This document shows positions 395 to 27,456 of a DNA stretch of 64,000 bases, piece by piece. The translations under genes were made by a program, and so were the position numbers. Within the stretch, counting starts at the first letter, position 1. Each line of letters begins with the position of its first letter. Under the pieces are notes generated by a model. The model worked only from the letters and a program-made list of their open reading frames with translations, was not told the origin of the DNA and searched no databases. Location of the stretch: sequence record MN047793.1. One strand, given 5' to 3'.

Positions 395-452
395 TGAAAC
401 TTCCTTTATAAGTTGAAAGAATTATACAGAGTTATTTGTGTTACGTCAACAA

Positions 453-2657: not shown

Positions 2658-2764
2658 TGTGTGAATACCTTTATGTGTAGAAAGTACGTGAATTATAGGT
2701 AGGTCATTTCGTAATGTCAACCCCTATCCGATCATCGGTCAATAGAAGTTAACTCATACCAGCA

Positions 2765-2824
2765 ACTATAAACACTAAATTTTAATTGTCAAGACTTGAC
2801 TTATAATTTAGGTTGCTGTAAAAT
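2765..2824. promoter_or_regulatory. Back-to-back sigma70-type promoters
   Basis: Minus strand TTGACA(2787-2792)-16-TATAGT toward rIIA; plus strand TTGACT(2796-2801)-17-TAAAAT(2819-2824). Confidence 0.65.
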
Positions 2825-2856
2825 GGATGGTAGGCCGGGAGCATAGGATGCTTCAG

Positions 2857-2888
2857 CAAAAAGGCCCGGATTTCTCCAGGCCTTTTGT
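2857..2888. terminator. Bidirectional intrinsic terminator
   Basis: AAAAGGCC-loop-GGCCTTTT hairpin. Confidence 0.7.
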
Positions 2889-3048
2889 TAGTCAGTAATT
2901 ACATGCAGTAAATGCGGCGGTACTAAAGCTTGAACAGCGCGGTATGCTTCTTCGTGTCCATTGGTTTGGTCTTCAGTAGCTCCGTAGGGAATAGCAGCAA
3001 TAGCGGCTAATGCTGCTCTAATCCCATCATAATAATCACTGGACATCA

Positions 3049-3219
3049 TTAACGAATAACTTCGCCAGTTGAACGGTCCATGATGCCGTAGGCAGTCGGA
3101 GAGTTCTGGTTACGCTTGAAGTCACGAGCATCTTCACGAGTTGCGGCGTTCTTTAGAGCCTTGGCAGTACCGGTACGATTGAAGCTCTTCTTGCTGAATA
3201 CAAAATAACGAGTTGACAT
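3049..3219 (-). CDS. Small basic hypothetical protein
   Basis: ORF MSTRYFVFSKK...; in operon orientation. Confidence 0.5.
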   Translation of the reverse strand: MSTRYFVFSKKSFNRTGTAKALKNAATREDARDFKRNQNSPTAYGIMDRSTGEVIR

Positions 3220-3302
3220 GTGGTTTAATTTCCTAAGTTCTGCGGTGTTGCTGTGCAGATGGGAGAATAATACCCACATCTCGTATTCTTGTCAATACTG
3301 TT

Positions 3303-3623
3303 TCAATGAATTTTTTGTCTTTTTGATTCAGCTACCTGAGCATCAAACTCACTAGCACGAATGGCCCGACACGTTGTCATCGGCTTAGGGGTGACAAACA
3401 TATCTTTTCCAATAACAATGAACCCCTCTTTGATTTCTGGACGCTGGTTCACCTTAATGAGATATTCCGATTTGTCTTCACCCACACAGCCGAGATACCA
3501 ATCTTCTCTTCGGTTAGCAGTGTATTCATGATAATCACTCCACCACCAGACCCCAATGAATACGACTAACATGGAATAGGTGAATTTTTCACCTACACTA
3601 AAGTTACTTTGTTTAAGTTTCAT
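3303..3623 (-). CDS. Hypothetical membrane-anchored protein
   Basis: One hydrophobic segment (MLVVFIGVWWW); overlaps the thg1 stop. Confidence 0.55.
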   Translation of the reverse strand: MKLKQSNFSVGEKFTYSMLVVFIGVWWWSDYHEYTANRREDWYLGCVGEDKSEYLIKVNQRPEIKEGFIVIGKDMFVTPKPMTTCRAIRASEFDAQVAESKRQKIH

Positions 3624-4356
3624 ATTCCACTTCGGGTTCTTCTAGTTTTTCAATGTGGAGCGAAACGTAATCTCGGCTCTGACTAAACACCGGAATAAGT
3701 ACGTCAATTTCTTTTGAGATTGAATTATAAGCAAGGCCACGCTTATAATGAATAGCCAAGTCATTCCAGTTAACTGGAATATCCATTTGCATTAGCAAGT
3801 CCTGCACTTCAGCATTGTTCAGTCCATGGCACTTGGCATGGCCTAGATAGTGGGTCGCTACACTACGAATGCTGTTACGCACTGCATCATTCTGACGCCA
3901 GATAAAATAATTGACCACTTCCTCTTTCGGCAGCGTAAATGCACGGGCATCAAACATCGCTAGCGGCTGACCCTCAAACGCCTCTGCTGCCAGCTGATTG
4001 AACTTAGCGGTCGCTAACGATGCTGCTACAGAAACCATCTTCTGTAGATTGTTATCGAACCATGCATCTGTGGTTAGTGTATCGTAATCACGTAGAAGAA
4101 TGCTAATCTCATCTGACTGAGTATAGGCAAACGATGCACCCTGAATATTGTCCACCACGAATTTAGTCGTATGAGCCATGATGGAAATAAACGTGTCATC
4201 ATGCGGACGGTCAAGGCCACGGGTCCACGTATGGAATGCCTTACCATCTAGACGAATGATAACGGGAGTACGACGCATGAATTTAAAACGGTAGACGTTT
4301 TCGTAACCTTTCATGCGGTCGCCGAACGAATCTCCCTTGGGTGCAGATTTTGCCAT
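3613..4356 (-). CDS. thg1: tRNA(His) guanylyltransferase Thg1-like 3'-5' polymerase
   Basis: Motifs GDRMKGYE, IIRLDGKAFHTWT, YTQSDEISIL, FDARAF and YFIWRQNDAVRNSI. Confidence 0.92.
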   Translation of the reverse strand: MAKSAPKGDSFGDRMKGYENVYRFKFMRRTPVIIRLDGKAFHTWTRGLDRPHDDTFISIMAHTTKFVVDNIQGASFAYTQSDEISILLRDYDTLTTDAWFDNNLQKMVSVAASLATAKFNQLAAEAFEGQPLAMFDARAFTLPKEEVVNYFIWRQNDAVRNSIRSVATHYLGHAKCHGLNNAEVQDLLMQMDIPVNWNDLAIHYKRGLAYNSISKEIDVLIPVFSQSRDYVSLHIEKLEEPEVEYET

Positions 4357-4369
4357 TTGAATTTTCCGG

Positions 4370-4846
4370 TTAGGTTCGTGGATTAATATTCCACAACTCT
4401 TTCAGTCTATCATACTTCTGCTTAGACTTGTTGTATTTTTGTACTTCCCGAATGGTAACATGTGCTCGCTTCCTTTCTTCAGAAAGGAGTTCCGTCATCA
4501 CATTATCCATCCGCAACTGGGTAGGTGACCCTATGTTGTATAGAGTATGACTACCAAGCCACTTATCCTTCAATGTGAACAAAGTTAACTTGACATTTTT
4601 AGTACCATCATGGGTAAAACGAATTTGCCGTTCACCCCATGTAAAAATCACGCATTCACTGACATGCCATTTGCCATATTTACGGGCCATTACATCAGGA
4701 GCAATTTCAACTAATGTATTAAAGTTAACATCAGCTGTAGTAAATGGAATAGCATCCGCACAACAACTAAATGCTTCAACATCAGTTGGTCGGTTATAAG
4801 CAATGTACTGCAAATAATCCAGTGCTGCCAAATATAATGGACTCAT
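4370..4846 (-). CDS. Hypothetical protein
   Basis: ORF; probable start MSPLYL at 4846. Confidence 0.5.
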   Translation of the reverse strand: MSPLYLAALDYLQYIAYNRPTDVEAFSCCADAIPFTTADVNFNTLVEIAPDVMARKYGKWHVSECVIFTWGERQIRFTHDGTKNVKLTLFTLKDKWLGSHTLYNIGSPTQLRMDNVMTELLSEERKRAHVTIREVQKYNKSKQKYDRLKELWNINPRT

Positions 4847-4850
4847 CGTA

Positions 4851-5144
4851 TTACCATTGAATGTCGTAAAGCTTTGCCAGATGACTATCAATCGAGGCCT
4901 TAATATGGTCCTCAATCCGCTTGATTTCTGCCTGAATCTTTTGCTCTTCGTTCATGCTAGACGGATAGTTCGTTTCAAAATTCCACGTGGTGGAATCCCA
5001 CACAATCTCATCAGCAAAGTGAATCAGAACAGTAGTACCGTCCGTAGTACCCGTAATCATGCCAAAGCGGTTGACCGGTGTGCGCTCCTTCAACATGAAG
5101 GCAATACGCTCATTCAACTTACGGACAATATCGAACAACATCAT
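4851..5144 (-). CDS. Hypothetical protein
   Basis: ORF in a tightly packed minus-strand operon. Confidence 0.55.
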   Translation of the reverse strand: MMLFDIVRKLNERIAFMLKERTPVNRFGMITGTTDGTTVLIHFADEIVWDSTTWNFETNYPSSMNEEQKIQAEIKRIEDHIKASIDSHLAKLYDIQW

Positions 5145-5197
5145 GATTTCGTAACTCCTTGGTCTAGGGCTAAATTATAGCCCTAATTTGGTGAGAG

Positions 5198-5866
5198 TCA
5201 AGTGAGGTTGATGAATGGCCGCGTCTCACCCGGACCAATCTTGGCAGCACGGTGGTACCCATCTACCAAAAATTTACCCTGATACACAACACCAATTGGC
5301 AAATCGATATCGGCAATTTCGTAGTCATCGACCTCAAAACGCTTCACCCGAGTCATGTAGTCATTGTTATGACGCAAGTCACCTGGGTCAATCCAAATTA
5401 ATCCGAAGCCAGTAGCATCCCGTACTGCATCAATCAAATAGGAATATTCGCGAAGCAGAACAAACTTGACAATCGCCAAAGAATCCTGTTGCAACTTCAA
5501 CATGTTATCAACGTCCTCAAGAAAATCAGATTTCCCATTGAACGACACATCACCAATTTCATCACCGTAATACCCACGGGTTACATCAACGGTCCATTTG
5601 GTGGAATCGTACACCTTGTGCATACGGAACAACCGGTCAATCGCATATTTCTCCATCAGCGTAGGAACATGCTTAGGAAGCCCCCATTGCGTTGGATTCT
5701 TTCCCAAGGGAACCTTAACAATATCCACCGGGAACTCTTTGCGCGGAACCGGACCTACGACAACATTAGCGATTCGAGAACTGCGTTCATTGTCGCTACC
5801 AGTACGGTCATAGTCATACGATGGCTCAATACGCAAATATGATTTAAGAGTATGCGACTTCATCAC
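5198..5866 (-). CDS. Hypothetical protein with C-terminal ParB/Srx-like motif
   Basis: LPIGVVYQGKFLVDGYHRAAK resembles the ParB-N xxDGxHR motif. Confidence 0.5.
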   Translation of the reverse strand: MMKSHTLKSYLRIEPSYDYDRTGSDNERSSRIANVVVGPVPRKEFPVDIVKVPLGKNPTQWGLPKHVPTLMEKYAIDRLFRMHKVYDSTKWTVDVTRGYYGDEIGDVSFNGKSDFLEDVDNMLKLQQDSLAIVKFVLLREYSYLIDAVRDATGFGLIWIDPGDLRHNNDYMTRVKRFEVDDYEIADIDLPIGVVYQGKFLVDGYHRAAKIGPGETRPFINLT

Positions 5867-5879
5867 TAATACCTAAATG

Positions 5880-6167
5880 TTATTTGGTAGACTTAATCTT
5901 GCTAACCAACATATCGACAAGTTGCCAGATTCCAATACCACTACAAATGGCTAAAGAAAGAGGCCACAAGCCCGCCAATAATACAGCGAACATAACCGAC
6001 TCAAACATATCGTCAGCTTCCTCGCCAGGGTAATACCCACGGTGCTTGTATTTGTTAATATTGGATACGGTCATCCCTACCACAACACTGAAGAAAATAA
6101 TCAGCATCAACCACCAACTATTAATATAGATGGTATGAAATACGTCCAGCATTTCAGAGAATGACAT
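5880..6167 (-). CDS. Hypothetical membrane protein (two TM segments)
   Basis: Two hydrophobic stretches. Confidence 0.55.
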   Translation of the reverse strand: MSFSEMLDVFHTIYINSWWLMLIIFFSVVVGMTVSNINKYKHRGYYPGEEADDMFESVMFAVLLAGLWPLSLAICSGIGIWQLVDMLVSKIKSTK

Positions 6168-6605
6168 TAGACTAATCCATGGTTAAGTTGGTAAAGCGTA
6201 ATCCACGGCAAACTGACTCCCACCACTAATGTGAGGAAGTCACTAAACCGCTTGGGGATTCCATACACAGAAATAAGCACCACGCCAAAGACAATGCTAA
6301 TGACGAGAGATACCAATGTAGAAATTTCAGGAAGTGTGTTCATGCATTAATTATAGCACGAACTTTCGTAGTGTCAAGTAATTTTATCTAGTAGTTTCTT
6401 TATCTTACTGGTCGCCCATTATTTCCGAACCTTCATCACAGCCTTTTTACCAACATGTTCAATCAACACAAAACAGATGAATAGCATGACCAGCATGCCA
6501 ACCGCTAACCCCAAAACAAATGCGATGGTATGCGAGAACTGAAACATGGTATAGCCCCTGTATTATAGTAAGGCTATATTAACAGAGTCATTTATAATTG
6601 TCAAG

Positions 6606-6983
6606 TTAGTCTGACAAAACTGTACAGACCACTTTCTCATCAGCAACATGCTTACCCACCAGACGATTAGCTGAATTCAATGCCTGTTCGTATGTAGGAA
6701 AACTCTTGATTACCTCATGCATCAAACCACCATGTACGTCACACGTGGTCACATACACCGAAACACCAATCTTCTCATCCAAGTAAGTAACGTAATACGT
6801 ACCATCATTATTAAGAATGACATCAGCACTCTTAATCGTTGACTTACGTTGCGGTTTGGGCGGTGGTGGTGGATTAGAAGGATTAGAACCTTTCCTAACG
6901 AACTTTACTTGGGTTCTAACTTTCCCCTCAGTAAATCCATTAGTGGCACGACCAGTTAGCCAATTGAATAGACGGTTCATCAT
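6606..6983 (-). CDS. Hypothetical protein
   Basis: ORF with ATGA-type coupling to the upstream gene. Confidence 0.55.
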   Translation of the reverse strand: MMNRLFNWLTGRATNGFTEGKVRTQVKFVRKGSNPSNPPPPPKPQRKSTIKSADVILNNDGTYYVTYLDEKIGVSVYVTTCDVHGGLMHEVIKSFPTYEQALNSANRLVGKHVADEKVVCTVLSD

Positions 6984-7303
6984 TCAGCCACTTTAGCCAC
7001 AACAGCATTTCGGACAATCTCAAGACAGTTTTTAGCTGACCACTGGTCAACCGAACTATCAAACTTTGCAATAGTAATGAACTGCTCAAGGTTACGCAAA
7101 GCTACCGACAATAATGGATGTTCCTTAGCAAGCTTACTAGATGGGTGCAATGGATCAGCACCAATATAAATCGCTTCCGGAGCTTCAGGCCATTCCTTTC
7201 GTAGCGTGGCAAACTCGCCCACATTCCACAAACGAAGAAATTCCAATCCATCATCAGTTTCAAGGGCAAATTGAATTGCCGCCACACTTGCATCATTATT
7301 CAT
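6980..7303 (-). CDS. Hypothetical phage protein
   Basis: ORF coupled to its neighbours. Confidence 0.6.
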   Translation of the reverse strand: MNNDASVAAIQFALETDDGLEFLRLWNVGEFATLRKEWPEAPEAIYIGADPLHPSSKLAKEHPLLSVALRNLEQFITIAKFDSSVDQWSAKNCLEIVRNAVVAKVAE

Positions 7304-7521
7304 CAGTTATTCCTCATAGCGTTAATCATAGCATCCCACACCTTACGGGTCTGTGGGTCCAAGGTACTATATGGCTCACTTTCTGTCCATGAGCCTTCAC
7401 CATATGCAGAGCATAGCACTGTCGGCTGTGGACATGCATGCGAACCAGCAGTCACCATTTTATCTGTCGGAATAATTGGGACCAATACATAACCTTCCGG
7501 AACCGAATATAATTTATTCAT
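7303..7521 (-). CDS. Hypothetical phage protein (PEGYVLVP motif, Eaa/DUF551-like)
   Basis: VPEGYVLVPIIPTDKMVTAG motif, common in small phage proteins. Confidence 0.55.
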   Translation of the reverse strand: MNKLYSVPEGYVLVPIIPTDKMVTAGSHACPQPTVLCSAYGEGSWTESEPYSTLDPQTRKVWDAMINAMRNN

Positions 7522-7850
7522 CGGTCATTTCCTTTAGGGTATAAGGGGTCTTCTACTCCAGTGATCGCATTAATGTCCATTCGACTTAACATACTCTTCT
7601 GAGTACGTAATTCTAATACTACTTGATCCTGTAGTAACACCAATGCACCCATGACCTCATGCAAATGCTCATGAGCAATAACCTTATCTACTCCAGCAGC
7701 AATTGCTAAAGCATGTAATGCATATACTGCATTCGTACCATCTTCATAGGTAGCAGCAGCAATCGCACGGCGTAGGTCTAATGTAGCATTAGCCGTTCGT
7801 CGGATATCCTCATCCGTTACTTGTTTATTTGTATCAATGCGCTTAGACAT
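7518..7850 (-). CDS. Hypothetical protein
   Basis: Probable start MSKRID at 7850 overlapping the upstream stop. Confidence 0.55.
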   Translation of the reverse strand: MSKRIDTNKQVTDEDIRRTANATLDLRRAIAAATYEDGTNAVYALHALAIAAGVDKVIAHEHLHEVMGALVLLQDQVVLELRTQKSMLSRMDINAITGVEDPLYPKGNDR

Positions 7851-8038
7851 CACCAATTCGCCATCGCCATGAACAATAAAACCACCGTTATTACCAGCCA
7901 AATAAAGCCAAGAAACGCACGGCCCACTGGTGCCCATTGGCTAATATCAAAACTCGCAGCAGCGAATGCGCCAGCCATGTAAAAAAGCATAGCACACAAT
8001 ACCGATGCAACAACTACCGCCAATAAATTATTCTTCAT
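7850..8038 (-). CDS. Small two-TM membrane protein
   Basis: Two hydrophobic helices. Confidence 0.55.
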   Translation of the reverse strand: MKNNLLAVVVASVLCAMLFYMAGAFAAASFDISQWAPVGRAFLGFIWLVITVVLLFMAMANW

Positions 8039-8394
8039 GTCCTATCTTCCATATCAATAGCAGCACGTGGACGATTATACAAAATATTACTGTAAATCTC
8101 TTCCACCATTTCCTTCGTCACATAATTACTTGTCCGCTTCCGGTTATAATTATACATGACTTCAGTAATATAATCATCATTTAATTCACGAGGTACTACC
8201 CGATATTCCGATGGAACTTTAGGTGCACGAGATACCAAATTATTATCACTAACCGTCAAGGCCTCAGCCAAGGCCAAACAATCATCGTCAGCCGCTTCCC
8301 ATTGGTCAGGTGACCATGTAAATTTGTCCAGCGCTCCACGTAGCCAAAAGACAACATTGTCTATTAACTGACGTTCATCATGGGTAATGTTCAT
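8035..8394 (-). CDS. Hypothetical protein
   Basis: Coupled ORF. Confidence 0.55.
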   Translation of the reverse strand: MNITHDERQLIDNVVFWLRGALDKFTWSPDQWEAADDDCLALAEALTVSDNNLVSRAPKVPSEYRVVPRELNDDYITEVMYNYNRKRTSNYVTKEMVEEIYSNILYNRPRAAIDMEDRT

Positions 8395-8846
8395 GCAGTC
8401 GCCACCGAATCATCAAGACCATGCTTCAGTGCAATCTCACGAAGACCATCGGTCACCTTAGAACGCCATAACGCCACATCCGTAATGTCAAAGATATTAT
8501 TACCATCATGAACTTGCTGAAACTTCGTCAGAAATTTCAGTCGTGAGTTACACTCACCATTTTCAACCGGCTCACCATCAAGATATAGGGCACTATACAC
8601 CGTAAATATTCCTGCAATGTTCAAGATATAATTATTTTGAACACGACTACTAACCTTCTTAAGCTCATCTTCACTCATAATCAAACCGACTGCACATCGC
8701 AAACCGTTATCTCCAGAGTAAGCACACGTGTCATAACCCGAATGCATACTAGAACAACCCTGCGCAAGCAATCGCACCGAAATGGTGTCAAAAATCTCCT
8801 GCTCAGTCATCGTCTCTACAGCAAGCTTCAGTGAGGTGTCCATCAA
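8391..8846 (-). CDS. Conserved-type phage hypothetical protein
   Basis: QEIFD...LLAQG...CAYSGDNGLRCAVGLI pattern; directly downstream of a consensus promoter. Confidence 0.6.
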   Translation of the reverse strand: MMDTSLKLAVETMTEQEIFDTISVRLLAQGCSSMHSGYDTCAYSGDNGLRCAVGLIMSEDELKKVSSRVQNNYILNIAGIFTVYSALYLDGEPVENGECNSRLKFLTKFQQVHDGNNIFDITDVALWRSKVTDGLREIALKHGLDDSVATA

Positions 8847-8872
8847 ATTATATCCTATGTGTGTAGGCCTAA

Positions 8873-8901
8873 ATTATAAATGATCAGTCACAACCTGTCA
8901 A
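8873..8901 (-). promoter_or_regulatory. Consensus sigma70 early promoter
   Basis: TTGACA-17-TATAAT on the minus strand. Confidence 0.85.
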
Positions 8902-8904
8902 CTA

Positions 8905-9048
8905 CTAATTGCCTAACGACCATAGACAATACATCACACCATGACCAACACTACGACACTCATCCCACTGCCAGCGGATACACCCACCAATCAATAACAC
9001 AAAAACCAATACCCCAGCACCAATCCACAATCGCTCATACCACTTCAT
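8905..9048 (-). CDS. 47-aa membrane miniprotein (not in the ORF track)
   Basis: MKWYERLWIGAGVLVFVLLIGGCIRWQWDECRSVGHGVMYCLWSLGN; RBS GAGAGG; own promoter upstream. Confidence 0.65.
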   Translation of the reverse strand: MKWYERLWIGAGVLVFVLLIGGCIRWQWDECRSVGHGVMYCLWSLGN

Positions 9049-9073
9049 ACACGCCTCTCTTTAGTATTAGCAA

Positions 9074-9102
9074 ATTATAACCAATCGTACCATAACTGTC
9101 AA
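9074..9102 (-). promoter_or_regulatory. Consensus sigma70 early promoter
   Basis: TTGACA-17-TATAAT on the minus strand. Confidence 0.85.
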
Positions 9103-9148
9103 CTACCATCATTCCCACCCAATACCACAGACCCCCGGCCTACCTCCC

Positions 9149-9209
9149 ATTTTACACTATAATTATTTTTTGTCAACCCCTTGACAACACAACTCATTTG
9201 CGGTATGCT
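9149..9209. promoter_or_regulatory. Divergent promoter pair
   Basis: Minus TTGACA(9171-9176)-16-TAAAAT; plus TTGACA(9181-9186)-17-TATGCT(9204-9209). Confidence 0.7.
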
Positions 9210-9242
9210 CTATCTGCCTAGAGCTATACCTGAACAACCAAA

Positions 9243-9408
9243 TGTTAAATTTCCGTTATTGTTAAAATAGCGTTAGGAAATTGTTAACAAATCGTTAAAT
9301 GTTAAAATATCGTTAAGAAAAGGTTATGATTTCGTTAACTTAACACTTTCTTAACATCTCAGCCCATATGTTAAAATTTCGTTAGAGGACCAGCCCACAT
9401 GACTTAAC
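9243..9408. repeat. Helically phased GTTA iteron-like array (candidate origin or protein-binding field)
   Basis: GTTA at 9244, 9255, 9261, 9272, 9283, 9294, 9301, 9312, 9323, 9334, 9370 and 9381 (11-bp steps within groups); inverted TTAAC pair at 9340 and 9351. Confidence 0.75.
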
Positions 9409-9544
9409 ATATCCATAAGAGGGTGTCAACAGATTCCCGACAAACGGTCAGTCGTAAGGTACTGATTCCTAAAGGGTTTGTTCCACTGGGAGAAATATAT
9501 GCATTCGTTGGTGAGAACCTATACGAACTAAAATTACACATAAA

Positions 9545-9562
9545 TTCTTTAAGCTTAAAGAA
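9545..9562. repeat. Perfect 18-bp palindrome
   Basis: TTCTTTAAGCTTAAAGAA. Confidence 0.8.
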
Positions 9563-9662
9563 ATAGAAATGATATAGTTCCTATATTGATATGATATCAT
9601 AGTGATATCACAATGATCTTAAAATTATAGAAGTAGGTGTTGCAAGGTTTACGAAATATTTC

Positions 9663-9691
9663 TTGCATTTCCTGTACAAATATCTTATAAT
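9663..9691 (+). promoter_or_regulatory. Sigma70 promoter driving the paralog array
   Basis: TTGCAT-17-TATAAT, 75 nt upstream of the first array ATG. Confidence 0.75.
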
Positions 9692-9765
9692 TACTCTACT
9701 AATTTCCTGTTTCAATACCTTCTCATTCGAACTAATAAGTCCTAACGCAAGCGTTACCCTTTATT

Positions 9766-10131
9766 ATGATCACCTTACCGTCTGGTTTTGCTACTACTAT
9801 TAAGATACTTCCCAAAGAGGATGGCGATTTTTATCATGATTTGTATGTGTTGTGTAACAGTATGGATTACACCTATAGTTATCTTAAGTTTTGTTCCGTG
9901 AGTCGTATTCAGGAATGGCATTGGTGTGAGGGTGATGTGTCTATTAACATGGTTAATGGCAAGCGTGATGACGGAGTTAGCATTTACATCAATGAGCGAT
10001 TGGTTGGTATATTTGCTACTGATAGCAGGATGTATCCGAGGCTGTATCCTATTCATAACCGTCGTGTAGAGGGTGGTGATGTTTATACAGCTATGTTGGC
10101 ATTCATTAAGAAGTGGGAGATTGGGGTATGA
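9766..10131 (+). CDS. Array paralog 1 (subtype A)
   Basis: NSM..Y / QEWHWCEGD / IYINERLV / AFIKKWEIGV. Confidence 0.8.
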   Translation: MITLPSGFATTIKILPKEDGDFYHDLYVLCNSMDYTYSYLKFCSVSRIQEWHWCEGDVSINMVNGKRDDGVSIYINERLVGIFATDSRMYPRLYPIHNRRVEGGDVYTAMLAFIKKWEIGV

Positions 10132-10448
10132 CGCTACCGTCCCCTGTTAATGGCGAAATACAATTCTATGTTGGGTTGTTCTTTCATGAGTTGTATCGGT
10201 TGTTGAACTCCATGGAGCACACCTATCATTATCAGTCTAAGGAATGGATGTGGTGTGAAGGTGATAACTGTATTAACGTAGTGAGCGATAATGGTGAAAT
10301 TATCATTCACATCAATGAGAGAATAGTTGGCAGATATATGATGGGTAGTGGTACTCCTAAGTTATGGTCTCATGATTTGGTTATAGATGATGGAGATGTT
10401 CATACAGCTATGTTGGCATTCATTGATAAGTGGGGAATTGGTGTATGA
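10128..10448 (+). CDS. Array paralog 2 (A)
   Basis: ATGA overlap; EWMWCEGD, IHINERIV, FIDKWGIGV. Confidence 0.8.
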   Translation: MTLPSPVNGEIQFYVGLFFHELYRLLNSMEHTYHYQSKEWMWCEGDNCINVVSDNGEIIIHINERIVGRYMMGSGTPKLWSHDLVIDDGDVHTAMLAFIDKWGIGV

Positions 10449-10819
10449 ATCTGGCTTCGTCTATTAATGGTGACATCAACCATGATGGAGACATCTATCG
10501 TGAGTTAGTAAGATTGTTCAACTCCATGGAGCATAGATATACTCATCAATACATGTTTCAGGAATGGCATTGGAGTGCGGGTGATAACTACATTAACATA
10601 GTGAACGATTTTGGTAAAATTATTATTCACATCAATGAGAGAATAGCTGGTCGATTTACGATTGATACTGTCCGGATTCCTCATGGCATAATTGTAGAGG
10701 ATGGAGACGTTCATATAGTTGGTAGATTTACGATTGATAGTGCTGGTACTCCTAAGTGTAGTCATGACGTTCATATTGCTGTGCTGGAATTTATTGACAA
10801 GTGGGAGATTGGTGTATGA
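10445..10819 (+). CDS. Array paralog 3 (A, with internal duplication)
   Basis: ATGA overlap; GRFTID and DVHI each occur twice. Confidence 0.8.
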   Translation: MNLASSINGDINHDGDIYRELVRLFNSMEHRYTHQYMFQEWHWSAGDNYINIVNDFGKIIIHINERIAGRFTIDTVRIPHGIIVEDGDVHIVGRFTIDSAGTPKCSHDVHIAVLEFIDKWEIGV

Positions 10820-11151
10820 CGACGCTACCTTCGCCTTTTACGGGTGAGATACAATTCTATCTTGAGTTCTATCGAGTGTTGAACTCCATGGAGTACACCT
10901 ATCATTATCCTGCTCAGGAGTGGCAATGGGGTGAGGATGATGTGTCTATTAATGTGGTTAACAATCCAATTAACAATGCCATTGATAATGGGATTAGCAT
11001 TTATATCAATGAAAGGCTAGTTAGTAAATTTATAATGGATAGGCACTGGAGTCCTAAGTCTTTATGGGAAAAAGAACTTCGTGTCGTAGAGGGTGTAAGT
11101 GTTCATACTGTGTTGTTGGAATTCATTGATAAGTGGGGAATTGGTGTATGA
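10816..11151 (+). CDS. Array paralog 4 (A)
   Basis: ATGA overlap; QEWQWGED, IYINERLV, FIDKWGIGV. Confidence 0.8.
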   Translation: MTTLPSPFTGEIQFYLEFYRVLNSMEYTYHYPAQEWQWGEDDVSINVVNNPINNAIDNGISIYINERLVSKFIMDRHWSPKSLWEKELRVVEGVSVHTVLLEFIDKWGIGV

Positions 11152-11498
11152 ACGTGGTAAGTCTTTCTTTTTATATTGATGATTTCATACTTGATGAATG
11201 GTTCAAGATTCTCGCCAATTCTGAATTCACTTATATTTGGCATGGTGAAACAATCTGTTGTACTCAGGAATGGCTACGTTGTGAGGGTGATAGCTCTATT
11301 AATATTGTTAACACCCGTACGGTTACAACGAGTTTTGTTAAAATTTATGTTGATGAAGAATTGGTTGCGGAGTTTGATCATGATGCGGATCATTTCTTCG
11401 TATTAACTACTGATGGTATCTCAAAGACTCCAGTTGCGTTAGATGAGGTTCGTTCTAATGTGTTGTCATTTATTGAGAAGTATGGTGTTGGTGTATGA
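11148..11498 (+). CDS. Array paralog 5 (subtype B)
   Basis: NSEF, TQEWLRCEGDSSINIVN, IYVDEELV, EVRSNVL. Confidence 0.8.
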   Translation: MNVVSLSFYIDDFILDEWFKILANSEFTYIWHGETICCTQEWLRCEGDSSINIVNTRTVTTSFVKIYVDEELVAEFDHDADHFFVLTTDGISKTPVALDEVRSNVLSFIEKYGVGV

Positions 11499-11857
11499 AC
11501 GTTGTACATCTTATTTTTTATAATAACGATATGTTACGTAATGAGTGGTTAGGATTGCTTGGTAATTCTGAATTCATCTATGAGTGTTGTGAAGATGTAT
11601 TGAGTTATACTAGTACTCAGGAATGGCTACGTTGTGAGGGTGATAGCTCTGTTAATATTGTTAACGTTGTTAACCATCGTATTGTTCTTGGGAATACTGT
11701 GAACATTTATATTGATGAAACATTGGTGTGTCAGTTTCATCATTATGCGGGTCGTTTCGAGCTAACTGATGGTACGTCTAATAGGCAAATTGCATCAGAG
11801 GTTGTTCGTTCTAATGTGTTGGAGTTCATTAATAAGTGGAATATTGGTGTATGCTAA
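11495..11857 (+). CDS. Array paralog 6 (B)
   Basis: TQEWLRCEGDSSVNIVN, IYIDETLV, FINKWNIGVC. Confidence 0.8.
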   Translation: MNVVHLIFYNNDMLRNEWLGLLGNSEFIYECCEDVLSYTSTQEWLRCEGDSSVNIVNVVNHRIVLGNTVNIYIDETLVCQFHHYAGRFELTDGTSNRQIASEVVRSNVLEFINKWNIGVC

Positions 11858-12222
11858 CTGTTCCTGTGTATAGTCCTTTGGTTATGGGACGTATCATCTA
11901 TGATGTACCGTTCTATCGTGAGTTGAATCAGTTGCTCAACAGCATGGAGCCATATTATAATTATCATGTATATACGGATATTCACTGTTATGAGTGGTAT
12001 TGGAGTGAAGGTGATATGTCTGTTAACTTGGTTAACCTAGGTAGTGTAGTAAGCGTTTACATCAATGAGAGGCTAGTTAGTCAATTTACTATGGCTGATA
12101 CTTCCAAGAGTAATGGTACAACCAATTCTATGGCGATTTATTGTAATAATGTGTATAAAACAGTTGAACACGTTCATACTGCTGTGCTGGCATTTATTGA
12201 CAAGTGGAATATTGGTGTATGA
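11851..12222 (+). CDS. Array paralog 7 (A)
   Basis: NSME, EWYWSEGD, VYINERLV, FIDKWNIGV. Confidence 0.8.
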   Translation: MLTVPVYSPLVMGRIIYDVPFYRELNQLLNSMEPYYNYHVYTDIHCYEWYWSEGDMSVNLVNLGSVVSVYINERLVSQFTMADTSKSNGTTNSMAIYCNNVYKTVEHVHTAVLAFIDKWNIGV

Positions 12223-12611
12223 GTACTGACGTGTTTGGATATCCTTGCGTGTCTCACTATTATGATAGTGGTAATGTATTATGTGTTGAATGGTTAACGA
12301 TGCTCCCTGATGAGGAATTTGATTACATTATCACTAGACAAGCTGGTGATAATTATAGTGACACTCATACTCAAGAATGGGTTCGATGCGAAGGCGATAG
12401 CTCTATTAATATTGTTAATATCATTACTATAAATGTTGATGGTAGATTTAGTCAGGTGAAAATTTATATTGATGAAACATTGGTTGCTCAGTTTGATCAT
12501 AATGCCGGCTATTTCGGTTATGATGGTACAGGGTTAAATAAAGGTTTGTCGTTAGATGAGGTTCGATCTGAAATTCTGTCATTCATTGAGAGATGGAATA
12601 TTGGTGTATGA
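12219..12611 (+). CDS. Array paralog 8 (B)
   Basis: TQEWVRCEGDSSINIVN, IYIDETLV, FIERWNIGV. Confidence 0.8.
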   Translation: MSTDVFGYPCVSHYYDSGNVLCVEWLTMLPDEEFDYIITRQAGDNYSDTHTQEWVRCEGDSSINIVNIITINVDGRFSQVKIYIDETLVAQFDHNAGYFGYDGTGLNKGLSLDEVRSEILSFIERWNIGV

Positions 12612-12964
12612 ACGCTGAAGAGTCGGTTTTATATGGTACTCGGTTCTATCGCGAACTATATGCAATACTTAACAGTATGGACTATAAGTCGGTATATATT
12701 TCTGTCGATGACGCTGTATGCCAAGAATGGCTTTGGAATGATGATAACAATACAATTAATGTGGTTAATTTTAACCAAGATACTGAACTTCTCTTTTACA
12801 TCAATGAGAGGCTATTTGGTAGCTTTAATGACCCTTCCTATTATGACAGTAACGGTAGTAGGGCGAGAATACATCCTTGGGTTATCAAAGGTCTTTATTC
12901 AGTTAATGGGAAACTACCCGTTGCCATGATGGAATTTATTGATAAATGGGGTATTGGGGTATGA
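12608..12964 (+). CDS. Array paralog 9 (A)
   Basis: NSMDY, QEWLW, FYINERLF, FIDKWGIGV. Confidence 0.8.
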   Translation: MNAEESVLYGTRFYRELYAILNSMDYKSVYISVDDAVCQEWLWNDDNNTINVVNFNQDTELLFYINERLFGSFNDPSYYDSNGSRARIHPWVIKGLYSVNGKLPVAMMEFIDKWGIGV

Positions 12965-13314
12965 GTAGTGCTGTTCCACACTTTAGTGTTAACAGTCCAT
13001 TTACTTCTCGGTTCTTTTATGAACTGTCTAGGTTTTTTAACAGCATGGAGATGGCTTACCGAATTACCTACTATGACGGTACTTTAAACGACCCCTTCGT
13101 TACAGAATGGATATGGTGTCATGGTGATAACTCTATTAATATCGTTCATCCTAACCATGGTACTCATGTTAGCATTTACGTAAATGAAAAACTTGTTGGT
13201 AAATTTAGTCACAATGCTTTATTGTTAAAAGCTACTCATTCTGAAGGCATTCCTGTAGAAGAAGTGCATTCAGAGATGGTAGACTTCATTAAACGCTGGT
13301 GTATTTGGATATGA
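12961..13314 (+). CDS. Array paralog 10 (A)
   Basis: NSME, EWIWCHGDNSINIV, IYVNEKLV, FIKRWCIWI. Confidence 0.8.
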   Translation: MSSAVPHFSVNSPFTSRFFYELSRFFNSMEMAYRITYYDGTLNDPFVTEWIWCHGDNSINIVHPNHGTHVSIYVNEKLVGKFSHNALLLKATHSEGIPVEEVHSEMVDFIKRWCIWI

Positions 13315-13655
13315 ATGATATAAAATTTCGGTTTATTACCAATAGTGAAATGCCGTTCTTTGTACGTCAGCTTAGTAAGCTTTCTTCTGATGTTATATGG
13401 TTGATGAATTCTTCAGTCAGATGGAATGGTGACGATATTTCTGTGTCTATTGAAAAGAGCCGTGACGGTAAGCTTATGATTTATATTAATGAACAGATGG
13501 TGGCTTGTTATATTATCGGTAATTTAGTAGTCCCATCATCCTCTGATCTTTTCTATTATGAATCATTTTTTCAAATGAATGGTACACTTCAGGTACCAGC
13601 AGATAAAATGCTCAGATATTTGAATGAGTTTATGGATAATTGGGGTAGACTTTGA
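13311..13655 (+). CDS. Array paralog 11 (diverged)
   Basis: WNGDDISVSI, IYINEQMV, EFMDNWGRL. Confidence 0.75.
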   Translation: MNDIKFRFITNSEMPFFVRQLSKLSSDVIWLMNSSVRWNGDDISVSIEKSRDGKLMIYINEQMVACYIIGNLVVPSSSDLFYYESFFQMNGTLQVPADKMLRYLNEFMDNWGRL

Positions 13656-13731
13656 ATATCGAAGTCAGGGGCTAGTAAACGGTCTATAATTGTGTTATGC
13701 TACTATCCTAATAGGACATTGGGTGACCATA

Positions 13732-14100
13732 ATGATTGACATCAAAATTGAATTTAAAAATCCTTATTTTATTGCAGATTTGGCTAGATTTAACGTAGAG
13801 CTGACCACGATGCGTGAGGGTAAACCTAACACGTTGCCAGGATTTTGGTCTGTTGGGGACGATTCTGTTGAAATAATTGTGCTCGATGCCAATACTGTAT
13901 GCTTCATGATTAATGAAGAAGTTAAAGCTGTGTACTATATGGAGCCACGCGATATAGATTTACAAACACGACAGCCTATTGGAATGTTAATATCTCGTCA
14001 CCGGTTTATTGAACGCCAAGGCAATGTGTACAAACGTCATCCAGATGACCAGTACATGAATAAAGTACTGGAATTTTTGAACACGTGGAGTCGTGAATGA
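13732..14100 (+). CDS. Array paralog 12 (diverged)
   Basis: WSVGDDSVEI, FMINEEVK, EFLNTW. Confidence 0.7.
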   Translation: MIDIKIEFKNPYFIADLARFNVELTTMREGKPNTLPGFWSVGDDSVEIIVLDANTVCFMINEEVKAVYYMEPRDIDLQTRQPIGMLISRHRFIERQGNVYKRHPDDQYMNKVLEFLNTWSRE

Positions 14101-14468
14101 CATCTGGTCCAACGGTAAAAATATCGGATGATGATTCAAAACGGTTCATGGAAGAACTATTCATGTTTCATTCTAGTGGGCAATTGTATAATTATTGGTC
14201 ACTCGATAATGATTCAGTTCTTATCTGTATTCCGAATAACGTAGATGTTGTGCGGGCCAAAAATGCTGAAATTGAAATACTGGTCAATGAAACATCGATT
14301 GTGAGATTTATAGGAAGTGTGGCGTTTATCCGTGAGTTATTCCGCAATCTTAATTGTAGAATTTATGATAATGTAACATATAAAAGTAATCCAAGTAACA
14401 TGATGATTCACTCGAATGACAATTATATGAAAAAATTATCAGAATTCTTAAAACGTTGGACTCCCTAA
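14097..14468 (+). CDS. Array paralog 13 (diverged)
   Basis: WSLDNDSVLI, ILVNETSI, EFLKRW. Confidence 0.7.
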   Translation: MTSGPTVKISDDDSKRFMEELFMFHSSGQLYNYWSLDNDSVLICIPNNVDVVRAKNAEIEILVNETSIVRFIGSVAFIRELFRNLNCRIYDNVTYKSNPSNMMIHSNDNYMKKLSEFLKRWTP

Positions 14469-14469
14469 G

Positions 14470-14811
14470 ATGTATCCCGATTGTATTCCGATAGAAATCC
14501 AGTTTAAAAATAACGAATTTTTTGATGACCTGTCCTATTTTTTGATGGGCTTCTGGAGTCATGAAAATAATAGTGTAAATATCGAACTTATAGATGATTC
14601 CGTTTACACAGATACCATAATCATCTACATAAATGAAGTAAAGGTATCTACCTATTATGTATATGGTAGAAAACATCCCGGTGAGTTATTTCACCTACCA
14701 ATGACTTTAAGGGTTTATAATGGATTTGCACGACCTAACATAATTCGTGATCCTCACGTTTATTTTCAAAAGATTATTGAGTTTGTAGATAAATGGGGTG
14801 GGGCTATCTAA
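14470..14811 (+). CDS. Array paralog 14 (diverged)
   Basis: WSHENNSVNI, IYINEVKV, EFVDKWGG. Confidence 0.7.
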   Translation: MYPDCIPIEIQFKNNEFFDDLSYFLMGFWSHENNSVNIELIDDSVYTDTIIIYINEVKVSTYYVYGRKHPGELFHLPMTLRVYNGFARPNIIRDPHVYFQKIIEFVDKWGGAI

Positions 14812-15203
14812 TGAAGACATTTAGTATGAATGATATAAATGATATGCTATTTTTTAATGATTTATATTCATTTACAAAAAAGTGCTATGACAGAAACTCT
14901 CCTCGTTCTCCAGTACTTTATAATTATACGAATGGTATACAGGAATGGTCGTGGTGCAATAATTTGCACGCAGTACTCATCAGTGATGATACTACTAAAC
15001 ATCAGGCTAGTATTTATGTTGATGAATTACTTATGGGCGAGTTACAATATACAATTTCTGATAGACGCAACATAGTCGTTGACAACATTCCCCTGATTAA
15101 TACTGACGACTTTTACGATGAAATTTTGAAATTCATTAATAAATGGGATATCATACCACAATCATCTATGGATTTAGAAAATGAATTCCCCCATAAAAAT
15201 TAA
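14811..15203 (+). CDS. Array paralog 15
   Basis: QEWSWC, IYVDELLM, KFINKWDI. Confidence 0.7.
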   Translation: MKTFSMNDINDMLFFNDLYSFTKKCYDRNSPRSPVLYNYTNGIQEWSWCNNLHAVLISDDTTKHQASIYVDELLMGELQYTISDRRNIVVDNIPLINTDDFYDEILKFINKWDIIPQSSMDLENEFPHKN

Positions 15204-15528
15204 TGATAATGATAATGACCTGTTCTATGAACAACTCTATCCGTTGTTAAAAATGATGGAGTATAATTTCGACTCAACTAAATCAAGCGAAGTATTTTCA
15301 TGTTCTAACATTGATGATTCCGTTGTAATTTGTAGGGAATATTTAGCTGGTAAATACTTATTAGATGAGCTATACATTTATATAAATGAACGCCTTGTGG
15401 CGTATTACAGTTTGTATATATGTCCTACTCCATTTTATCTGGGTCCTGTGATAGTCTCGGTAGATCATGATGAATTTATGAATAATATCAATAAATTTGT
15501 GGATACCTGGGGTAGACTTGACACCTAG
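15181..15528 (+). CDS. Array paralog 16
   Basis: MMEY, IYINERLV, KFVDTWGRL. Confidence 0.7.
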   Translation: MNSPIKINDNDNDLFYEQLYPLLKMMEYNFDSTKSSEVFSCSNIDDSVVICREYLAGKYLLDELYIYINERLVAYYSLYICPTPFYLGPVIVSVDHDEFMNNINKFVDTWGRLDT

Positions 15529-15545
15529 ATGGGAAGTGATATAAT
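15518..15545 (+). promoter_or_regulatory. Internal sigma70 promoter (extended -10)
   Basis: TTGACA-16-TATAAT with TG at -15/-14; ATG only 5 nt after the -10 box. Confidence 0.7.
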
Positions 15546-15550
15546 TAGGT

Positions 15551-16111
15551 ATGAACAGGCCATTATATGATAATTTATATCAACAGATTTTATCCAAACT
15601 AAACAGTGACATCAGTAATGAGTTACTTATTGCCTCTGGTGTAATAACCCATACTACACCATACAAAAACTTCATTTTTAACAAACATCCTTACAAAAGT
15701 GTAGTTCCATTTAATAACGTACGGAATATGCACACCAGTGATACACCGTGTTATACCATTAAGACAGAAGACGCAATGGTCATGCAGTTACGGTTGCGCC
15801 GCCTTTATATGTCATTTTGCGTTAAAACTAGACTTGAATCCTATGGATTAAAATATGTTTCTTTCGCCTGCTCTCGGCAACCTAAAATTGTAGAGGCAGT
15901 AACTGATTTAAACATAAGTAATGGTGGTTCACTGGTGTTGATAGTCATCAATGAAAGTACATTTGTATTTCTAATAGATGTTGACATCACAGAATTAAAT
16001 GATGACGTTATTACAGAATCATATATTGATGATGAAGAACTATTTTCAGAATTAAATGAGTTCTTTATTGATTATACTGGATTTAACGTATCTGAAATGT
16101 TAGAGAGTTAA
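15551..16111 (+). CDS. Hypothetical protein, probable distant array member with N-terminal extension
   Basis: IVINESTFV and ELNEFFIDY echo the array motifs. Confidence 0.6.
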   Translation: MNRPLYDNLYQQILSKLNSDISNELLIASGVITHTTPYKNFIFNKHPYKSVVPFNNVRNMHTSDTPCYTIKTEDAMVMQLRLRRLYMSFCVKTRLESYGLKYVSFACSRQPKIVEAVTDLNISNGGSLVLIVINESTFVFLIDVDITELNDDVITESYIDDEELFSELNEFFIDYTGFNVSEMLES

Positions 16112-16112
16112 T

Positions 16113-16505
16113 ATGCCATATAATTTCCCTATCGCATCCAAGAGATTCATCATGACCAATGATGTCATGACTCAACTTCAGGAATATGAAGTTCAGGAAT
16201 TCTTACTTAGGATTGCTAGATTATGTGCCAGTAATCCAGATAATAAATTCAATGATGTTGTCTTCTTCCCCAGAGATAACGCAAAAATATATAGTCCTGA
16301 ATATGATACCACCACATGTTTGGTGCTAATGGATGGATATTTCAAACTGACCTTGAACGAACAGAAGTTTTCTGTGCGTATACCAAATATGTATGCTAAT
16401 ATTTTAGAATTCATAGATTCATATACAATTGTTGAAGGTTACGATGGAGAAATATTCAATCACGTAATGAAATTTATTGAAGACTACTGGATCATCAAAT
16501 CATAA
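16113..16505 (+). CDS. Hypothetical protein, probable distant array member
   Basis: LTLNEQKF and VMKFIEDYW. Confidence 0.6.
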   Translation: MPYNFPIASKRFIMTNDVMTQLQEYEVQEFLLRIARLCASNPDNKFNDVVFFPRDNAKIYSPEYDTTTCLVLMDGYFKLTLNEQKFSVRIPNMYANILEFIDSYTIVEGYDGEIFNHVMKFIEDYWIIKS

Positions 16506-16518
16506 GAAGTGCTAACGC

Positions 16519-17061
16519 ATGCGTTATAAACAATTTAACATGGTACAAGGTTCCGCTTATTCGGAATTAACACCATTACAGCAGGATTATTATGTAATGC
16601 TGGTTCGTATTCGTAAATTACTAGAATATGGACTTGGATATTCCGTTAATTTAAAAACTAGACTGCGAATAAAATCTAAAACTGGTCAAGGTCACGGGTT
16701 AGTTCAGCTATATGAAGTGACATTTTCAAATGGATTTATGATTACCTATGGCACAAACAAATCTGGCTCTTACTATTTTGAATTAGATTTTTCATGCTAC
16801 AAGTTGGTAGTGTCAAAGCTGTTCCATGGAAAGCCAGAGTTGGTTGCTTCTAGAGATTTAATGTTTAGAATCAATCATACTATCTTCTGTAAGGCTCTTG
16901 TTGATAAAACTAATGATATTGATGAGTTAGAGTTAGAATCACTACTTCAGGAGTTCTATGACGACTATATGGGGGAAGATGCGTACGGAGAGCTTATACG
17001 CAATTCCATATTGAATGACAGCCTAACTCCTGCGGAGCTACAGCGTATGACGCCATGGTGA
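16519..17061 (+). CDS. Hypothetical protein, possible distant array member
   Basis: FRINHTIF and LQEFYDDYM. Confidence 0.55.
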   Translation: MRYKQFNMVQGSAYSELTPLQQDYYVMLVRIRKLLEYGLGYSVNLKTRLRIKSKTGQGHGLVQLYEVTFSNGFMITYGTNKSGSYYFELDFSCYKLVVSKLFHGKPELVASRDLMFRINHTIFCKALVDKTNDIDELELESLLQEFYDDYMGEDAYGELIRNSILNDSLTPAELQRMTPW

Positions 17062-17113
17062 GCTTACAGAGCTTCCTATGGCGTTTTACGTACATTGATG
17101 GTATACTGCCAAA

Positions 17114-17407
17114 ATGAATTCATTTAAATTACTTATTAACTTCATTGAACAGTGTAAGTTACATTCAGGAAACGGACGTTACATTGCTACCAATGTCAAT
17201 GACATCGCTTCATTTGCTGATGTGTCTATCCCAATGGAAGTAAAGATTACCGAAAGTGGTATTAGCATTGAAAAGCCAGCAGTATCATATCTCTCTATAA
17301 ATTGGGATAGGATTCCTGAGAAATATAAACGGGAAATCGTAGACATTCTCACTGAAGACGAATTGGACAAGCAATTAGAGCGTGAGTTACGATCATTCTT
17401 TACGTAA
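17114..17407 (+). CDS. Hypothetical protein
   Basis: ORF after extended -10 TGgTATACT (17099-17107). Confidence 0.55.
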   Translation: MNSFKLLINFIEQCKLHSGNGRYIATNVNDIASFADVSIPMEVKITESGISIEKPAVSYLSINWDRIPEKYKREIVDILTEDELDKQLERELRSFFT

Positions 17408-17456
17408 TGCTTCAGCTATACCAAACAATCCCATAAACATCATCGACACACTAAGG

Positions 17457-17488
17457 AATGCTGCATTATTATATGCGGCATTTTTTAA
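17457..17488 (+). terminator. Intrinsic terminator ending the array operon
   Basis: AATGCTGCAT...ATGCGGCATT followed by a T-run. Confidence 0.6.
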
Positions 17489-17553
17489 TTCTAGCAAAGA
17501 ATAAATGAAAAGGGCTGCGGATAGCAGCCCAAATATCACTCTAAAGATTAATT

Positions 17554-27428: not shown

Positions 27429-27456
27429 GATAATTCCTAGTTTTATTATTTATTAC

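Follow-up and report, generated by a model that had tools for sequence, protein, structure and literature searches.

A tandem array of fast-evolving paralogous genes in a variable genome slot of the Xanthomonas jumbo bacteriophage Xoo-sp13

Why would a large bacteriophage keep up to 19 related small genes side by side, and what could their products do? This question is raised by Xoo-sp13 (MN047793.1; 309,023 bp record), a Xanthomonas jumbo bacteriophage with the host X. oryzae pv. oryzae, and in particular by a stretch of 64,000 nucleotides (nt) of its genome, hereafter called the window, whose coordinates equal those of the record minus 62,000 (window positions 9600-17200 are 100% identical to the record). 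According to the table of open reading frames (ORFs) of the window, 19 consecutive ORFs, all on the + strand, span 9766-17061 and thus make up about 2.4% of the record. A first-pass annotation, made from the letters alone, had described them as a tandem array of 16, up to 19, paralogous genes, transcribed as one operon, and had proposed a diversifying effector cassette system. The array of paralogs is confirmed by the present analysis, which also finds 16, up to 19, to be a reasonable number of members. Its products are constrained yet fast-evolving, and their role may lie in the interaction with the host, a reading to which we give slightly less than even chances.

The proteins of genes 1-10 are pairwise 24-54% identical, with BLAST E-values (E) between 1e-5 and 1e-35. 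Recognized by BLAST and profile, they comprise clade A with gene 1 (9766-10131, 121 amino acids (aa); profile E=3.4e-42), gene 2 (10128-10448, 106 aa; joined to gene 1 by an ATGA overlap), gene 3 (10445-10819, 124 aa), gene 4 (10816-11151, 111 aa) and gene 7 (11851-12222, 123 aa), clade B with gene 5 (11148-11498, 116 aa), gene 6 (11495-11857, 120 aa) and gene 8 (12219-12611, 130 aa), gene 10 (12961-13314, 117 aa) between both clades, and gene 9 (12608-12964, 118 aa) as a further member. A profile built from these ten genes only was searched against all 378 six-frame ORFs in the window and retrieved the divergent members gene 15 (14811-15203, 130 aa, with a C-terminal extension; E=1.8e-11), gene 16 (15181-15528, 115 aa; 4.4e-8), gene 14 (14470-14811, 113 aa; 1.3e-7), gene 11 (13311-13655, 114 aa; 3.9e-7) and gene 12 (13732-14100, 122 aa, or 125 aa in a public gene call that uses an alternative upstream start; 7.6e-5). 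The weakest of the 16, gene 13 (14097-14468, 123 aa), reached merely 0.029 and is tied to genes 12 and 16 by BLAST (E ~1e-3). Beyond these 16 genes, no match below E=0.04 was obtained with this profile, and outside the run of 19 no window ORF had E < 0.5. Genes 1-16 (9766-15528) code for 106-130 aa each when ATG starts are used. The sequence motifs by which the whole family had initially been defined are present in genes 1-10 and degenerate in genes 11-16.

Genes 17-19 are remote members. With the 16-member profile, gene 18 (16113-16505, 130 aa) and gene 17 (15551-16111, 186 aa) were both marginal, at E=0.003 and E=0.023, while gene 19 (16519-17061, 180 aa; a later ATG at 16540 may be its start) was without match. 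The profile of a sister family in the related phage XacN1 has precisely these three as its best window matches (gene 18, 3.9e-4; gene 19, 2.3e-3; gene 17, 8.3e-3), followed by gene 10. Gene 17 carries the XacN1-type C-terminal helix, and gene 18 bridges both families.

The mostly ATGA-coupled arrangement proposed at first was borne out, as 10 of the 15 junctions within genes 1-16 show such an overlap; the remaining five measure -7 (between genes 6 and 7), +76, +1, -1, and -23 nt. Each upstream gene carries, within its final conserved codons, both a GGAG-like ribosome-binding site and the start of the gene that follows, and the conservation of the C-terminal tail is therefore partly due to dual coding. 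The statement that all genes form one operon goes too far: a gap of 76 nt follows gene 11, and a predicted sigma-70 promoter with perfect consensus (15518-15545, + strand, 12/12 positions, extended -10) lies 5 nt before the start codon of gene 17. Its -35 hexamer overlaps the end of the gene 16 coding sequence, and the transcript would be leaderless or near-leaderless. Likewise, the term cassette system, which implies machinery for switching or shuffling, is not supported, with no sign of an expressed-versus-silent arrangement among genes that are co-oriented and translationally coupled.

At the DNA level, repeat families with a spacing of 317-383 nt confirm the periodicity of the array, and conserved repeats of 40-77 nt are found at the junctions between its genes. 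Gene 3 contains an in-frame 72-nt tandem duplication in a variable loop (copies at 10643-10681 and 10715-10753, repeat family D16), and genes 5 and 6 share a 53-nt tract (11260-11312 and 11613-11665) that is 98% identical although the proteins are 50% identical. Direct repeats of this kind, together with a deposited annotation that calls fragments, could suggest chance ORFs in a DNA-level tandem repeat instead of real genes. This is hardly conceivable given that every unit has a single long open frame, confined to one strand, that conservation is protein-like, that indels come in multiples of three, and that the ratio of nonsynonymous to synonymous substitution rates (dN/dS) is below 1 for most pairs; moreover, the predicted folds are confident and an independent public gene call is full-length.

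As to the public records of this DNA, the GenBank annotation of 9766-17061 (positions 6167-13462 of the compared Xoo-sp13 sequence L001) reads 'hypothetical protein' throughout, with most array genes cut to internal Met starts (60, 66, 68, 83, 87, and 89 aa, for example) and several uncalled. The independent gene call on the same DNA recovers the full-length array ORFs, and a public assembly of the original Xoo-sp13 run breaks within the array at window position 11621.

Do these proteins belong to a known family? None of the 16 members had a credible match in Pfam, PHROGs, NCBIfam or PADLOC, and none matched Pfam or NCBIfam, the immunity families SUKH and Imm included, at E<=0.01. The profile, a hidden Markov model, found nothing among PDB sequences (best E=0.57). 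Known anti-defence and defence families showed neither a sequence nor a fold match, a result obtained with Pfam, PHROGs, NCBIfam, PADLOC, and the PDB and with no dedicated anti-defence profile library. The literature searched contained no account of the family, and Rfam models yielded nothing over 8800-17500. Searches with the family matched sequences of the same phage alone, in phage records as well as, with the profile, among about 15 billion proteins. A tblastn search with two members against 50,697 phage records found Xoo-sp13 only, a profile search of 5.8 billion clustered proteins gave 5 matches, and an exhaustive HMMER scan of 1.84 billion representatives gave 15, 4 of them common to the earlier 5; all 16 distinct matches are exact substrings of the array ORFs of the window. 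Outside Xoo-sp13, therefore, no relative of the family is detectable, in agreement with the first impression that no known family is represented; we call the family KW-type, as its C-terminal helix ends in Lys-Trp. A 51-kb public contig with identical proteins was rejected as a relative, since it matches 12,480 bases of the window at 100% identity and is hence the same phage. A scan of viral contigs with the neighbouring helix-turn-helix (HTH) protein led to one match of 38% identity on an unrelated high-GC contig without array-like genes.

The array proteins share one predicted and previously undescribed alpha/beta fold. AlphaFold2 modelled gene 1 on the 16-member alignment with a predicted local distance difference test (pLDDT) of 77.6 and a predicted template modelling score (pTM) of 0.73, the order of elements being a strand, a long helix, a five-strand antiparallel meander, a low-confidence loop of 20 residues, and the C-terminal helix. 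A XacN1-type member (pLDDT 84.4, pTM 0.78) was predicted with the same order and one strand fewer. Foldseek comparison of the gene 1 model with the PDB gave nothing convincing (best E=0.076, template modelling score (TM) 0.25), the XacN1-type model had no PDB match, and the fold searches of both models reached at best E=0.02-0.08 and a TM of at most 0.31. An NTF2-like or cystatin-like fold, for which a TM above ~0.5 would be expected, was not supported: several NTF2-like entries matched the gene 1 model weakly (TM 0.15-0.31, E>=0.68), and none matched the XacN1-type model. In BFVD, the significant matches are probably the phage's own paralogs, plus one 128-aa protein (TM 0.63/0.60, probability 1.0), whose accession prefix suggests an unconfirmed origin from XacN1, its UniProt accession not being mappable to a XacN1 ORF. 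Strands beta4-beta6 and the C-terminal helix are most conserved and almost free of indels, and length varies in the beta2-beta3 region, in the beta4 region by the beta4-beta5 turn, and in the loop between beta6 and the helix (18-38 residues). All array proteins are acidic, with isoelectric points (pI) of 4.2-6.1, and genes 1-16 encode no segment hydrophobic enough for a membrane helix.

Whether such an array is unique to Xoo-sp13 can be judged from related phages, of which XacN1 is the closest according to topoisomerase II (72% identity), followed by the Stenotrophomonas phages CM1 and RAS14 (59%). BLAST orthologs in XacN1 (33-85% identity) cover the window at 2-5177 and from 17396 onward, and no similarity was found by BLAST across 5178-17395. 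The flanking gene order is the same in XacN1, in the XacN1-like genomes L005 and L008, and, inverted, in RAS14. Between a block with a tRNA-His guanylyltransferase gene and a block of HTH, glutaredoxin, and macro domain genes, the slot of XacN1 contains ORF134-159, all co-oriented, 13 of which carry a common C-terminal helix motif ending in Asp-Tyr (DY-type). The sister array in XacN1, ORF134-ORF152 (annotated as 'predicted ORF'), and the copies of it that uncultured XacN1-like contigs carry occupy the same slot as the Xoo-sp13 array, behind the same control region and the same 20-nt palindrome, and resemble it in gene size, co-orientation, coupling, predicted topology, a related C-terminal helix, and rapid turnover. 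The two differ in that the helix ends in Asp-Tyr in XacN1 and in Lys-Trp plus a 4-residue tail in Xoo-sp13, and in that no BLAST similarity connects them; each copy resembles copies of its own phage most.

A more distant connection is suggested by profiles. The best XacN1 matches of the window family lie inside the sister array (E=0.007 and 0.035), and the top matches of the cross-profile searches fall within the two arrays, with E from 4e-4 to 0.035. In a profile-profile comparison by hhalign, the 20-column C-terminal helix alone is aligned (E=0.003, probability 10%). For genes 17 and 19, both long, an orthologous relationship to their long counterparts in XacN1 and RAS14 is weakly indicated (E ~0.01-0.05, 18-sequence set). 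The KW-type and DY-type arrays are hence probably one superfamily that was expanded separately, or homogenized, in each lineage.

The slot itself, which has the conserved control region as its left border and conserved genes to its right, varies strongly in content and is by no means invariant among relatives. Ahead of a methyltransferase gene it holds 18 genes in L008, 19 in XacN1, and 24 in L005, whereas in RAS14 it comprises only three genes of ~180-200 aa with a related C-terminal ending. Within the XacN1 clade, flanking genes are 94-99% identical and array genes 27-91%, genes having been gained and lost mostly toward the promoter-proximal end. The slot turns over far faster than its flanks, as genes are acquired or lost, loops are duplicated in frame, and patches of sequence undergo gene conversion. 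In Xoo-sp13, paralog similarity peaks among genes 1-10 and falls off toward genes 11-19, which suggests that the newest copies are promoter-proximal.

Some further observations concern these slots. XacN1 ORF137 (L003 20276-20617) is annotated with a TTG start and 113 aa; its start is probably placed too late, since metagenomic orthologs of 134-137 aa include the N-terminal helix. XacN1-like genomes possess six extra genes (ORF153-158, L003 27591-30189), including the FkbM-type methyltransferase, between the array and the ortholog of ORF159, and none of them is found at 17062-17113 of the window. On the other side of the divergent region, RAS14 (L004 22261-30389) features 31 co-oriented overlapping ORFs of 70-100 aa, among which BLAST recognizes paralog clusters of 5, 4, 4, 2, and 2 members and which represent another expansion-prone zone. 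Leftward small ORFs on the - strand of the window (5198-8846) are likewise without BLAST counterpart in XacN1 and are not mutually paralogous; the hyperplastic zone therefore extends to both sides.

How the array is controlled is approached best from the non-coding region upstream of gene 1 (9480-9765, + strand), which is conserved in XacN1 and L005 and, by alignment, spans the position where the left terminal repeat of XacN1 ends. In the three-way alignment, the ~300 bp ahead of the first array gene have a mean column identity of 71%, although the array genes downstream are not alignable by BLAST. Two adjoining 8-nt palindromes (TGATATCA) at 9592-9610, a candidate operator, are conserved in XacN1 and L005; with 5 copies of TGATATCA in the window versus 2.3 expected, only this conservation is telling. 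Immediately ahead of the gene 1 start codon lies a palindromic element of 20 nt (9737-9756, + strand), which marks the array start in XacN1, L005, and L008 as well and recurs with 2 mismatches at the start of gene 19 (16507-16526, + strand), giving 2 copies in the window versus 0 expected. As RNA, the copy before gene 1 has no unusual folding stability (z=-0.13), and a conserved block of the upstream region is not repeated elsewhere in the window in the manner of a promoter motif. Near-consensus sigma-70 sites are enriched in the window (19 versus 3.45 in shuffles) and co-oriented with genes, one of them being the site before gene 17. The promoter near 9663 named by the first-pass annotation does exist as a pair of hexamers (9664-9669 and 9687-9692, + strand, 17-nt spacer), but it agrees with the consensus at 9/12 positions, falls below the scan threshold, and is not conserved in XacN1.

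The location relative to the genome ends is informative as well. The left terminal repeat of XacN1 is 65,875 bp long and ends at record position 65,875 (PMC5852040), which aligns to window position ~9490, and ORF134 starts at 66,126, i.e., 251 bp past the repeat end. If Xoo-sp13 is organized like XacN1, a terminal repeat of ~70 kb would end at ~9490, and its second copy may have been collapsed and so be missing from the 309-kb record. The origin-like region that had been noted beside the array may correspond to iteron-like repeats upstream, at 9238-9420, where at least 5 copies of a ~20-nt unit (core TGTTAAAAT..CGTTA) lie in inverted arrangements between divergent operons, just inside the terminal-repeat boundary by XacN1 alignment. 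There, the sign of the GC skew flips, coinciding with the switch of the coding strand. Farther left, on the - strand at 8873-9176, three tandem near-perfect predicted sigma-70 promoters (12, 12, and 11 of 12) point leftward, and their positions are kept in XacN1 (L003 18032-18524) and L005 (1317-1810). Early expression of the array, which had been deduced from its context in an assumed early region, is plausible but unproven.

A conserved, palindrome-bearing control region next to iteron-like repeats, with Clp protease and replication genes nearby (annotated in the XacN1 neighbourhood, with orthologs in the window) and a highly conserved C-terminal helix and tail, would also fit regulators or adaptors of the phage's own machinery, e.g., of transcription, of replication at the nearby repeat-rich region, or of the phage Clp protease. 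Nevertheless, such a function appears unlikely. The phage partners are conserved (33-85% to XacN1), and the same would be expected of their ligands, but no part of the region is less conserved than the array; moreover, the acidic pI speaks against DNA binding, and the conservation of the tail is largely due to the overlapping ribosome-binding site and start codon.

Under which selection do the copies diverge? For 45 core pairs of window paralogs, the median dN/dS is 0.48, and genes 5 and 6 reach 1.04 at a synonymous divergence (dS) of 0.36; the closest pairs have dS values of 0.36-1.06. Synonymous sites are not saturated, as the closer pairs use the same codon for 62-86% of the residues they share, versus 43-49% expected from codon usage. 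Orthologs of the sister array (XacN1 versus L005) show dN/dS of 0.08-0.48 and the flanking genes 0.00-0.14. When pooled per structural element, dN/dS is highest in the beta4-beta5 turn (~2.5) and in the long loop, although pooling over non-independent pairs means that these values are not to be over-read. The array proteins are accordingly constrained yet fast-evolving; the raised dN/dS is suggestive of the diversification that had been proposed, but loop diversification by positive selection is not demonstrated.

Taken together, the orphan nature of the family, its place in a syntenic hot spot beside a terminal repeat, the small acidic soluble proteins, their rapid turnover, and the absence of the XacN1 array ORFs from the virion proteins listed for that phage argue for accessory genes that evolve fast and serve host interaction in a XacN1-like jumbo phage, a reading which we consider nearly, but not quite, an even bet. 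The raised dN/dS, the enrichment of sigma-70 consensus promoters, and the kind of genes found downstream also count in its favour. A small acidic soluble protein would have undergone lineage-specific expansion in a hyperplastic accessory slot, and its copies would be produced early or, failing that, be controlled by the conserved palindromes. The paralogs might then act by binding or inhibiting host factors or defences stoichiometrically, with different members possibly covering different targets.

Several results weigh against this host-interaction role. No resemblance of array members to known anti-defence, host-takeover or inhibitor proteins was detected, and the window scan found no near-consensus sigma-70 promoter before gene 1, so that early timing is unproven. 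Homology between the KW-type and DY-type arrays is weakly supported, being drawn from low profile scores, predicted topology, and synteny, and both fold models are predictions from shallow alignments (16 and 24 sequences). The collections searched contain no second genome of the Xoo-sp13 lineage, which makes array variation unmeasurable within it. Moreover, dN/dS is below 1 for most pairs, and in phylogenetically independent pairs loops (0.51-0.79) do not differ significantly from the core (0.42-0.45; Fisher p=0.19 and 0.70), even though such loop values are far from strong purifying selection. Relaxed constraint alone could explain the replacement rates, and the Nei-Gojobori (NG86) estimates are distorted by gene conversion and AT-rich codon bias.

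These selection data would also fit birth-and-death of redundant copies: one accessory function would have been duplicated repeatedly, for dosage or by junction recombination, and its copies would drift apart under relaxed constraint without new specificities. dN/dS is raised across the whole protein instead of in the loops, the junction repeats of 40-77 nt and the conversion tract offer a ready duplication mechanism, and identity decays gradually along the array. Still, all 16 reading frames have stayed intact although identity is down to 24-54%, and they have done so in DNA with a GC content of 31-40%, in which ORFs arising by chance are short; the core motifs and predicted fold have been kept. 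Orthologs in the sister array are under purifying selection (0.08-0.48), and dosage alone hardly explains the long retention of many diverged copies. Redundancy is accordingly an explanation to be taken seriously, if one that we regard as improbable.

Paralogous head or ejection proteins are common in large phages, and in view of this general occurrence a virion-associated, ejected or assembly protein has to be considered. Such a role is very unlikely here. The XacN1 array ORFs appear only in the ORF table and supplement of the XacN1 paper and are not among the virion proteins listed there, from a gel-band proteome that is shallow; in addition, no similarity to a structural protein was found, and the array is situated among small accessory genes, far from the structural modules.

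A host-interaction role can further be examined by comparison with known systems. Hyperplastic regions of the T4 superfamily are generally known for small genes of unassigned function that vary between conserved syntenic modules, and the Xoo-sp13 slot, in a phage with T4-like rIIA/rIIB, topoisomerase II, and RNA ligase genes, resembles them in its conserved syntenic flanks and in a content that differs between related phages. As to early expression from host-type promoters, the consensus is enriched in the window and one site precedes gene 17, but none precedes gene 1. In contrast to the mosaic of unrelated ORFs in T4-type regions, the slot is dominated by one paralogous family of 16-19 copies. 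The terminal-repeat module of SPO1 and the pre-early genes of T5 are likewise dense clusters of small genes near a terminal repeat, and the XacN1 paper likens its terminal repeats to those of SPO1 (PMC5852040). Nevertheless, the SPO1 and T5 genes do not form one paralogous family, the array lies just outside the repeat (in Xoo-sp13 by alignment with XacN1 only), and strong early promoters are not evident at its start.

In eukaryotes, poxvirus gene accordions and the multigene families of large DNA viruses combine tandem paralogs near the genome end with a copy number and content that vary among relatives in a host-interaction context, and in this they are comparable to the array. The accordion named in the first-pass annotation does not describe the Xoo-sp13 array, as accordion copies are recent and near-identical amplicons whereas those of the array, at 24-54% identity, must be old; nor is there any homology, the viruses being unrelated. 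The multigene families are closer, as an analogy. Following it, the array might be an evolvable repertoire on a new fold, in which a regulated, translationally coupled operon at the terminal-repeat boundary gains promoter-proximal copies, each paralog neutralizing a different host defence or factor, as a phage counterpart of the terminal multigene families of eukaryotic viruses. This more specific proposal is doubtful, though not far-fetched; under it, the independent KW-type and DY-type expansions would track different Xanthomonas hosts. Immunity-gene arrays of polymorphic toxin loci (SUKH, Imm) also consist of tandem, small, fast-diverging alpha/beta binders, and some of these families have been recruited by viruses. 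The deposited annotation contains no toxin gene beside the Xoo-sp13 array, adjacency not having been searched exhaustively.

On its right, the slot is closed by gene 20 (17114-17407, + strand, 97 aa), a conserved neighbour with relatives in XacN1 (ORF159, E=4.5e-4) and in RAS14 (one gene, E=5e-5); matching neither family profile, it is a non-member. Genes for an HTH protein, glutaredoxins, a macro domain protein, and a nucleotidase follow downstream. Also in the neighbourhood, at 25242-29727 and 34008-39581, a pectate-lyase-like beta-helix protein, an RCC1-repeat protein, and a 1857-aa protein with a C-terminal GDSL lipase domain are encoded; these large genes, unrelated to the array, are candidates for enzymes that belong to the virion or act at the host surface.

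For biocontrol, jumbo phages that infect plant-pathogenic Xanthomonas are under consideration, yet most of their genes are unannotated. Arrays such as the present one break assemblies and confuse gene callers, and the family adds a predicted fold without solved relatives. From ~3 members in RAS14 to 18-24 slot genes in XacN1-like genomes and 16+3 in Xoo-sp13, a comparative series is available. If the copies are drifting duplicates, they would represent a clear case of birth-and-death in a phage genome; if they form a host-interaction repertoire, the array would be a compact natural example of a large phage diversifying one scaffold.

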